Below are positions 52,311 through 64,000 of a stretch of DNA of 64,000 nt, piece after piece (within the stretch, counting starts at the first letter, position 1; every line of letters begins with the position of its first letter). This DNA comes from Anolis carolinensis. Lineage: Eukaryota. A program made the translations under genes and the position numbers. Under the pieces are notes generated by a model, which ran no database searches, was not told where the DNA came from, and worked only from the letters and a program-made list of their open reading frames with translations. The stretch covers positions 208,579,747-208,643,746 of the forward strand of contig NC_085842.1 of NCBI RefSeq assembly GCF_035594765.1. Direction: 5' to 3'.

Positions 52311-53414
52311 ATATTTAATATCAATGGGTATATTTTAGTCTAATTTTATTGACAGACACTAAATTAAAATGCCCCACAGAATCTTGTAAATCATTTACTA
52401 AGACAACTTTCACCTTCCCAAAACGCTTCTTGGAAGGCTTTTAAAAATCAAAACCCAAGAAATCTGACTTGGTTTTAAGAAGTTGTCCTGTAAAAATTTA
52501 GAGGAACTGGAGGCCCAAGAAACCTTCAAGACACAAAAAGCAGATTAAAAAAAAAACATGAAAAGCAAGAAGTTGTTATTGTTAGGACTGTCGATTCTGA
52601 AATTCACAGCAAGCCTCTCCTGGGACAATTTCTAAAAACAGGGTGCATGTGGAGTTTAATGGTATGCGTACAGCAAATACATACATATTCTAGTTTTCAA
52701 AATACTGCACTATATATATCCATTGTTATAGGGGCAAACAGAAGGTTTAAAGAGTACCTTCTGTTTGTGTATGTGTGTGTGTGTTGACACAGGCATGCAT
52801 ATGGATGGATAAAGAAGACACTCCCACAGATAGTAGAAGCACTGGCCCCCCACAACACACACACACAAAACCCCCTCAAATGCAATCCCAAAACAAACAC
52901 ATAAATACTCTGGAAATGAAATGTCCACTATCTATAAAGTCTAAGGGACAAGAAGGATATCTAACTCCATCTGTCTATGTATATCTGCATGGATAGATAC
53001 CACTCACAACAATAACAAACAACAAAACTGTGTATTGTAATATTGGCTTTTGCCTCCCTAGTGCTGTGTTTGCAACTAGGAAAGCAAAAGCCAATATTAC
53101 AATACATAGACATAGAGCAGGAGAAGAGAGAGGATGGAAGGAGGTGTGTTGACGGGGAAACTGGAGAAACTAAGTCGATTTTACTGAAAGAAAGGGTTTC
53201 TTTGGTGTGAGCGTAGGAATGCTCCAAGGAGTTTGGAGACGAGGAGGGAAAGGGCGCGTTGGGGGGGGGGGGGGGTGAGAAAAGAAGTGGCCTTTAAAGG
53301 GAGGAAGGCTGGAGGAAAAGAAAGAAACCCCAACAAGTTCAATAAGGGTGGCTGTGTGTGTCTATATCATGTATATCCATCTCTCTCTATGTTCCTGTTG
53401 TTGCTGTTCCCCAG

Positions 53415-53707
53415 CTCCCGGAAGGCGCAGTGGCAGGCAGACTTACAGCCGGTATCAGACCTTGGAGCTAGAGAAGGAATTCCTCTTCAACCCCTATTTG
53501 ACACGGAAGCGGCGCATTGAGGTCTCTCATGCCCTGGGACTGACAGAGAGGCAGGTCAAGATATGGTTCCAGAACCGGAGGATGAAATGGAAGAAAGAAA
53601 ACAACAAGGATAAACTCCCCGGAGCCAGGGACGAGGAGAAAACCGAGGAGGAAACCAACGAGGAAGAGGAAAAAGAAGAGGAGGAAAAAGAAGAAAGCAA
53701 GGACTGA
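53415..53707 (+). CDS. HOXC8: Hox-C8 exon 2 (homeodomain and acidic tail)
   Basis: Acceptor CCCCAG. Encodes [75 protein letters not shown]...*. Confidence 0.97.
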
Positions 53708-59456: not shown

Positions 59457-59606
59457 GGGCCCTTCTACACAGCTGAATAAAATTGCACATTATCTGCTTT
59501 ATACTGGGATATAGGGCAGTGTGGACTCAAATATCCTAGTTCAAAGCAGATATTGTGAGATTTTCTGCCTTGATATTCTGGGGTATATAGCTGTGTGGAA
59601 GAGCCC
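59457..59606 (-). mobile_element. Same MITE family, opposite orientation
   Basis: GGGCCCTTCTACACAGCTG...CTGTGTGGAAGAGCCC, with AAA on both flanks. Confidence 0.7.
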
Positions 59607-60138
59607 AAAAGGAAATGGGGGAAAGGCATAGATGTGGGACAAAACTGTTCAGGACAGGTTAGGTTTGCTCCTGATAGAGAGATCAAAATGTCCTGTTCGT
59701 TTTATGGGACCCTTTTTCTCCCTGGAAAAGGGAGCGTCCATTGTCTCCCCAGTCGCCCTTGTGAGGGTTCCTTCCTCGTCGTAACTTTTAACTACCTGTT
59801 ATAAAATTTATGGGCGGTTTGTAAAAAAAGGAAAGAAAGAAAAAGTAATTTCCGTTCCATCCGGTTGGACTGCAAGCTATGGTGTGTTTTCAGACAGACA
59901 AACACTCGCACATGTATTGGGGAACACACCCACACTTTGCTTTCTCCAAAAAAACATGCCGAAAACAAGAGTCAACTGCCTGGCTAAGAAAGAAAAGCAA
60001 TGGCTGGCACAATCCAGCCCCATTTTCCCCGTGAGAAATGGGTAAGTAGGTAAAGTCGGGCAGAAGATAGAATCCAAGGTAGACTTCCTACTTCTCCTCA
60101 CCAAATTGTCTTTCTGCCCCTCCACAAAATGATGTCTA

Positions 60139-60288
60139 TGTGTTGTCGAAGGCTTTCATGGGTGGAATCACTGGGTTGCTGAGAGTTTTCCGGGCTGTAT
60201 GACCAAGTTCCAGAAGCATTCTTTCCTTTTCCAAAAGGAAATAATGCTTCTGGAACATGGCCATACAGCCCGGAAAACTCTCAGCAAC
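60139..60288 (-). mobile_element. Fold-back PLE pLTR turning at the hammerhead cleavage site
   Basis: Arms end at 60227 and restart at 60236. TSD-like ACAAAATGATG at 60124 and 60287. Confidence 0.85.
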
Positions 60289-61138
60289 AAAATGATGATT
60301 TCCTCCATCAGATACTGTCTTCTGTGATATATATATATATATATATCACAGCAACAAACTCACAACAACAAAGTGATGATTTCCTCCGTTATATATATAT
60401 GTGTGTGTGTGTGTGTGTATACATATATATATATATATAGAGAGAGAGAGTATATGTGCGTGTGTATATAATGTCTGTTTATCCATCTTCCATCTGTCCA
60501 TCTGTGTATATCTCGATGTTTGTATCTTATCCGTAGTTGTTCTTTCATCTACCTATTTTTCTGTCTACCGCCCCAGATGGAACTAGCAAATCTAAAGGAA
60601 AATACTTTTGATACTTCTCAGATTAATAATCTATCCATCAGATGGGTTTGCTCTAACTCAAGGAAGTATATTCCATCATAATTCCCACCACACCAGTGTT
60701 GGCATATGTATACAAATACACGACAGTGTTGAATCTCAGGGTATCACCAGGGGAAAGCGCCTATAGACTCCTCGATGGGATATTGAGGTATTGAGATTAA
60801 TGAAGTCTTGAATGTGCAAAATGGGAAAGGGCTTCCACCTTTGAGGTCACCTGTTCCAGCCTTTTTGGATCTGAAGGCCAAAGGAGAGAACACTTGCCCC
60901 ATTTGGCGGATAGGTTTTATTCAGGAACCTCCTGCTCCTCACAAACCTACTCTAAATAGAAGGACCAAAATTCGGGATTTGGGACGACCTTGATATTTCC
61001 TAGGAGAGTGCCAAGTGTGGAAGGGAAGGCGATGAAAATGGCAGTCAGTGGTCAAGAGGAGTAGATATCATGGTCTGGGGATGCAACCCAAATCTTGGGT
61101 GCGGTGAGTGGCATAACCCTGGCTAGACGTGTCTCTAT

Positions 61139-61286
61139 GGCTTCTTCCACACAGCTGAATAAAATCCCACATTATCTTCTTTGAACTGGAACTGGCAGTA
61201 TGGACTCAGATAATCCAGTTCAAAGCAGATATTGTGGTATTTTTTTCCCTTGATATTCTGGGTAATATGGTTGTTTGGAAGGGCCC
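61139..61286 (-). mobile_element. Same MITE family, diverged copy
   Basis: CTTCCACACAGCTGAATAAAATCCCACATTATC...GGAAGGGCCC. Confidence 0.65.
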
Positions 61287-63797: not shown

Positions 63798-64000
63798 TAC
63801 ACACACACACAGGCTTGAGGTTGATCAAACGTCAAAATATATAGATGCTGAAGATATATATAGGTGTTTAGTCAGTCTGGCGGCTATATATATATATATA
63901 TCCTCAACATCCATATGTATTTACGTTTGATCAACCTCACGCCTATATATATGTGTGTGTAGGCACGAGGCTGATTATTATATATATATAGTGATGTTTA

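Follow-up and report, generated by a model that had tools for sequence, protein, structure and literature searches.

A standard layout of Penelope-like elements (PLEs) consists of 5'-truncated arms in inverted orientation, only one end of which bears a tail, and self-priming has already been inferred from their palindromic junctions (PMC3846280; PMC8557442). The same inverted structures occur in Naiad PLEs, which have no ribozyme. Minimal hammerheads are near-universal in the PLEs of animals, although whether they cut in vivo, and to what purpose, is an open question (PMC4209133, PMC8557442, PMC11167929). The described system closest to the present locus is Poseidon_Ac of Anolis carolinensis, whose hammerhead cuts in vitro at GTC^A only in the presence of protein, cleavage being switched on by the PAc protein itself (PMC11167929). 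In that work uncut RNA was the main template of the assay in vitro, ribozyme-dead mutants inserted normally and gave products of unchanged size, and no RNA-seq reads started or ended at the cut; the shortest active 5' truncation of the template, among those tiled, was at +20 of the ORF, and the cut product starts at nucleotide 30 (PMC11167929). Both target strands were nicked and extended by the enzyme, which was modelled as a dimer, and there were two RT starts and a tail comprising nucleotides 85-119 (PMC11167929).

We analysed a window of 64,000 nucleotides from the A. carolinensis genome, set in the lizard HoxC cluster (mir-196 at 28513-28586; HOXC8 exons at approximately 50899-53707). Between HOXC8 and HOXC6, some 6.4 kb downstream of the former, lies a 151-bp head-to-head insertion of the Poseidon pLTR (60138-60288), here called K. 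Positions in the element are numbered throughout from +1, the first base after GTC at the hammerhead cut (GTC^AGG), and pairs of breakpoints are given as tail arm/inverted arm, so that K is +1/+1. An earlier note on this DNA had taken K for a fossil of ribozyme self-cleavage, in which RT copied a cleaved RNA to its 5' end, added eight untemplated bases, primed on itself and copied its own cDNA. Our analysis indicates that K is more likely to be an ordinary insertion than proof of ribozyme cutting in living cells. The window also contains a second, unrelated family of short, MITE-like hairpin repeats (47863-48009, 49610-49844, 59457-59606 and 61157-61247), and a 73-nt inverted repeat at 63799-63956 adjoins a stretch of N.

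The repeat in the window matches Poseidon_Ac (File S1), and its consensus translates to the N-terminus of PAc; most protein matches to the first 40 codons come from gene models of anoles. K shares pLTR homology with this family, including the first ORF codons, and its arms are 93% identical to the window consensus; it has the form of an inverted, 5'-truncated copy with a TSD in AT-rich DNA and a tail on one end only. The ORF for RT and GIY-YIG is absent from K, as expected of a solo end and with no bearing on family origin. The family consensus and copy H, the longest pLTR and our reference, possess every part of a minimal type I hammerhead (CUGANGA, stem II, GAAA, a minimal helix III, an NUH cut and stem I), the core of the window consensus reading CUGAGGA/stem II/GAAA-C-GUC with stem I as CCU:AGG. 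Counted from the A of the start codon of the ORF, the cut falls at 29 nt, or 26 nt past the codon, which agrees with the published position in Poseidon_Ac; the earlier identification of a PLE with a hammerhead, and the coordinate assigned to its cut, were right. Neither arm of K contains the catalytic core. An Rfam scan returned no hammerhead at the gathering threshold, minimal motifs of this kind not being covered by Rfam.

Several database records also carry this repeat. RefSeq models of anole caspase-14 begin within a Poseidon copy (L001:10002-10107; P0007), and in one isoform the PLE N-terminal peptide forms the start of the protein; several more gene models of the anole include it. The record P0028, a contig of 648 bp annotated as 'Pseudomonas syringae hypothetical protein', is a translated lizard PLE repeat and probably represents contamination; pattern scans at the DNA level found no copies of the element in collections of prokaryotic genomes and metagenomes.

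Table 1. Coordinates of K, its surroundings and the other pLTR copies discussed (breakpoints as tail arm/inverted arm).
Feature	Positions	Strand	Description
Left TSD copy of K	60124-60134	+	11 bp, ACAAAATGATG
TCT	60135-60137	+	3 nt between left TSD and K tail; may be degraded element sequence past the tail (by eye against Poseidon_Ac nt 120-127)
K arm 1	60138-60227	-	Tail-bearing, consensus +90 to +1; 93% identity to window consensus
K apex spacer	60228-60235	no strand	8 nt, TTTCCAAA
K arm 2	60236-60288	+	Inverted, tail-less, consensus +1 to +53; end is the second published RT start
Right TSD copy of K	60287-60297	+	First two bases (AC) common to element end
Local duplicate	60348-60390	+	Junction of K arm 2, TSD and flank, within a (TA)n run
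Fold-back B	3090-3197		+12/+30; TSD
Fold-back D	12797-13011		-46/-34; joined via 5-nt microhomology TGAGG; degenerate 10-bp TSD
Fold-back E	14577-14757		-27/-17; TSD
Fold-back F	16553-16732		-7 (or ~-16)/-26 (or ~-21); TSD
Fold-back G	33371-33577		-47/-21; TSD
Fold-back I	44646-44760		-37/+32; both arms end near +56
Copy H	34850-35252	+	Longest pLTR, intact hammerhead, reference; start codon at 35131, +1 at 35160

Comparison with the consensus confirmed that arm 1 stops, and arm 2 restarts, on +1 exactly, and each end at +1 is followed by TTT. The arms are 91% complementary across 64 nt, and K folds strongly (z = -10) about a palindromic apex. The TSD, which the earlier note had missed, brackets the pair, and so both arms belong to one insertion event. 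They differ at 3 of 53 sites, compared with 13% in other pairs of arms, and have two derived bases in common. Both carry T at +46, where the local duplicate keeps the consensus A. An assembly artefact is an unlikely source of K, because the locus has a TSD, its arms differ at three sites, and its words were found in 16 runs, each of which contained 61-81% of them.

The apex spacer is ambiguous. Eight nucleotides do separate the arms, as had been reported, and these may be untemplated or slippage bases on both cDNA ends; their foreign origin is less clear, since the minus strand reads GAAA directly before AGG, which corresponds to consensus -8 to -5 with CGTC deleted and one base extra. A random 8-mer permits such a four-base parse about 5-6% of the time. 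The arms proper begin at +1, and the statement that no sequence upstream of the cut is present would not hold if the spacer retains these four bases. Taken alone as a cDNA 3' end, the spacer yields no hairpin, and so no stable priming hairpin, a stem appearing at the apex only once two or three bases of arm 2 join it.

If cleavage defined the 5' ends of templates, breakpoints should peak sharply at GTC^AGG, and as a dominant feature this expectation fails. Seven of the 11 pLTR copies in the window are head-to-head, and the six besides K break between about -47 and +32 (Table 1). Of the arms that reach the cut, 23/25 read through it and the only stops are the two at K, a single locus. We added loci from protein look-ups, two from Anolis (L001, which also has an intact CR1 ORF2 of 911 codons at 34788-37523, and L002) and three from other lizards. 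Solo copies in the window and the two anole loci start at -7, -8, -30, -38, -47, -60, -105 and -115 or farther upstream. Gecko copies run through the cut to at least -36, their ends at -36 to -39 being mostly a limit of alignability rather than true breakpoints, and no pLTR copy was found in the skink locus (L005). In the leopard gecko, a near-perfect and young-looking palindromic Poseidon insertion with a TSD and two intact hammerheads (L004:9134-9421) has its apex upstream of an intact hammerhead, which demonstrates that symmetric apices also arise away from the cut. Variants shared between arms amount to 1.0% within loci and 0.5% between loci, the copies being too old for a comparison of arm identity at birth.

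The outer ends are far more regular than the inner ones. Every tail-less end examined, whether of inverted arms or of solo copies, stops at +53 to +56 (12/12), and tail arms stop at +83 to +92. Among nine fold-backs from the anole window and two geckos (L003:15039-15264 and L004:9134-9421), eight pair a tail-bearing arm with an arm ending at +53 to +56 and none has two tails. Since one tail end is combined with one short end in 8/9 cases, two priming events appear to be coupled. The second published RT start forms the outer end of all inverted arms; this favours a route in which both strands of the nicked target act as primers over snap-back, which leaves unexplained why the copied strand should halt there in every case. 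Likeness of the flanks to element RNA beyond +56, as expected of priming by microhomology, was not significant (P ~0.07). The inverted arm is contained in the tail arm in B, D, E and G, and in K also, as copying of a cDNA upon itself predicts, and the microhomology in D suits snap-back well, though it is compatible with either route. Fold-back F, however, has an inverted arm that extends farther upstream than its tail arm, and cannot be a copy of the latter unless a later deletion intervened.

Contigs from three whole-genome data sets, two from the species of the window and one from another, were aligned to copy H (54,000-70,000 contigs each). Free ends are commonest at 35215 (+56), as 3' ends, with at least 1287, 1302 and 1378 contigs, and further main ends lie at 35213-35214 and 35248 (+89; at least 234-277 contigs). 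In none of the sets does the cut (35160) rank among the six places with the most support, which bounds it at <114, <120 and <137 contigs; no upward step in depth occurs there in the two runs from the species of the window, and no blunt strand-switch joint falls on the cut among those listed with a summed depth greater than ~19, joints with inserted letters being listed by depth only. A dominant genome-wide peak at the cut is excluded. Against an estimated background of a few tens per base, these contig tables of top entries would not reveal an excess of two- to four-fold at +1. The best-supported strand-switch joints genome-wide are of another kind, tail-to-tail, where 35213-35215 (+54 to +56) is joined directly to 35248-35251 (+89 to +92) of a copy in inverse orientation, target DNA being absent from the joint (26, 22 and 9 contigs); these could be tandem fold-back units or insertions into the element's own end. 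In addition, a junction of 35184 with 35114-35115 (+25 to ~-45, separated by 9-10 AT-rich letters) reaches a depth of 147-323, many times that of a single copy, and suggests an amplified, rearranged unit.

Chance was gauged with a rough model. If each base takes about 0.9% of the ends, the probability that one arm of 28 falls on +1 is 22%; that both arms of one among seven fold-backs do so is 0.06-3%, according to the frequency of symmetric apices. For independent arms the value is ~1e-4 to 7e-4 per fold-back, and across the 757 windows scanned between 0.2 and 9 matches of both arms to +1 would be expected by chance.

We consider it probable, with due reserve, that K is an old, dead-end insertion of the Poseidon family, made in a single event by joining two target-primed cDNAs head to head, and that its apex lies on +1 by chance. 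The GIY-YIG endonuclease would make staggered nicks some 9-11 bp apart in AT-rich DNA, consistent with the TSD observed, and each 3'-OH would prime RT on element RNA, one at about +90, where the tail starts, and the other at about +53 to +56. The outer ends are observed, and the two priming events are suggested by extension of both strands in vitro. Both cDNAs would halt early, in keeping with nearly all PLE cDNAs, which stop within ~100 nt, and would then be joined; their stops would be spread over the hammerhead region, and those of K, or a later remodelling of the hairpin apex, would have fallen on +1 fortuitously with no need for a ribozyme cut. This accords with a TSD round both arms in B, E, F, G and K, with outer ends that coincide with the two RT starts of PAc both locally and genome-wide, with scattered inner breakpoints and read-through of the cut, with the genome-wide tables, with the geometry of F, with the gecko apex, and with insertion unaltered in hammerhead mutants (PMC11167929). 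Against it, both arms of K meet the cut to the base, which is rare for independent arms, and a modest excess at +1 would escape the contig tables. The similarity of the K arms is what copying from the same template predicts, although conversion between the arms predicts it too.

That K records hammerhead cleavage in vivo, with a minority (~1-3%) of Poseidon integrations templated on cleaved RNA, seems to us somewhat unlikely; the molecules that ran off the ribozyme-made 5' end would be either two target-primed cDNAs or a single cDNA plus the snap-back copy of it. In the first form, which we judge unlikely, the hammerhead 3' product would serve as template with both RT starts retained, and each cDNA would end at +1 and pick up a few extra T, through slippage at the terminal A, before the ends were joined. 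Two primers on cleaved RNA would give the layout of K, with both arms ending exactly at +1 and TTT after each, and the PAc protein does turn on cleavage in vitro (PMC11167929). Against this, K is one locus in about 20, and the cut is not a dominant end genome-wide; uncut RNA is the dominant substrate, the shortest active truncation among those tiled lies at +20 whereas the cut product begins at nucleotide 30, and RNA-seq has no ends at the cut. The claim that cleavage defines template 5' ends in vivo is not borne out by the 23/25 arms reading through, and the published PAc data and the ribozyme-less Naiads count against it.

Alternatively, the template may have had a core lacking CGTC, or the arms may have been homogenised to that state later, so that the arms truly broke at -7/-8 and quasi-palindrome correction made the apex symmetric. 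A single extra base suffices for this explanation, chance alone would give the parse in no more than about 5-6% of cases, other 5' ends lie at -7/-8 (F, L001 and L002), and the consensus A at +46 of the duplicate hints at later arm-to-arm conversion; yet no second copy with the deletion occurs among the loci fetched, and it would itself be a coincidence for a deletion to end precisely at the cut. We judge this reading decidedly unlikely. Least of all do we credit snap-back on cleaved RNA, the route of the earlier note, which is highly improbable: exact +1 ends, a palindromic apex, the self-priming proposed for PLE junctions and the R2 snap-back that follows full-length cDNA speak for it, but it demands cleavage as well as snap-back and is opposed by the lack of a priming hairpin, the fixed outer ends and F.

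The chance-apex, two-primer reading has a parallel in the twin priming of L1, where both nicked target strands prime cDNA and a 5' inversion results inside one TSD. In L1, however, the two arms represent separate, non-overlapping stretches of a single RNA, and annealing of the second primer is internal and at random positions, whereas Poseidon arms overlap and their second start is fixed at +53-56. The HDV-like ribozyme of R2, with its snap-back, is a precedent both for 5' junctions fixed by self-cleavage and for snap-back of the cDNA 3' end (PMC3774820; PMC11371274), but there the cut sets full-length ends systematically; Poseidon copies mostly read through it, and their 5' ends are concentrated at the cleavage site neither among the arms (2/25) nor among the top free ends of the contig sets. 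Copies in the anole number hundreds of thousands. On present data, cleavage is at most a minor route. K resembles published inverted pLTRs of PLEs in its head-to-head arms, one-ended tail, TSD and palindromic junction (PMC3846280; PMC8557442), although those studies did not map apices relative to the hammerhead cut or tie the outer end of the inverted arm to the second RT start. With Poseidon_Ac, the element inserted as K has in common the start of the N-terminal peptide, a hammerhead spanning the start codon and cut 26 nt past it, the tail (nucleotides 85-119), two RT starts matching its two outer ends, and an AT-rich target (PMC11167929). It differs in belonging to an older sister subfamily (~93% identity to the window consensus, the Repbase consensus differing at about nucleotides 55-85), in having no ORF body and in the loss of the catalytic core from both arms. 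The mechanism of head-to-head junctions lay outside the scope of the PAc study (PMC11167929), and inverted arms that end at the second RT start, beside a partner with a tail, provide a concrete two-primer model for such insertions in PLEs.
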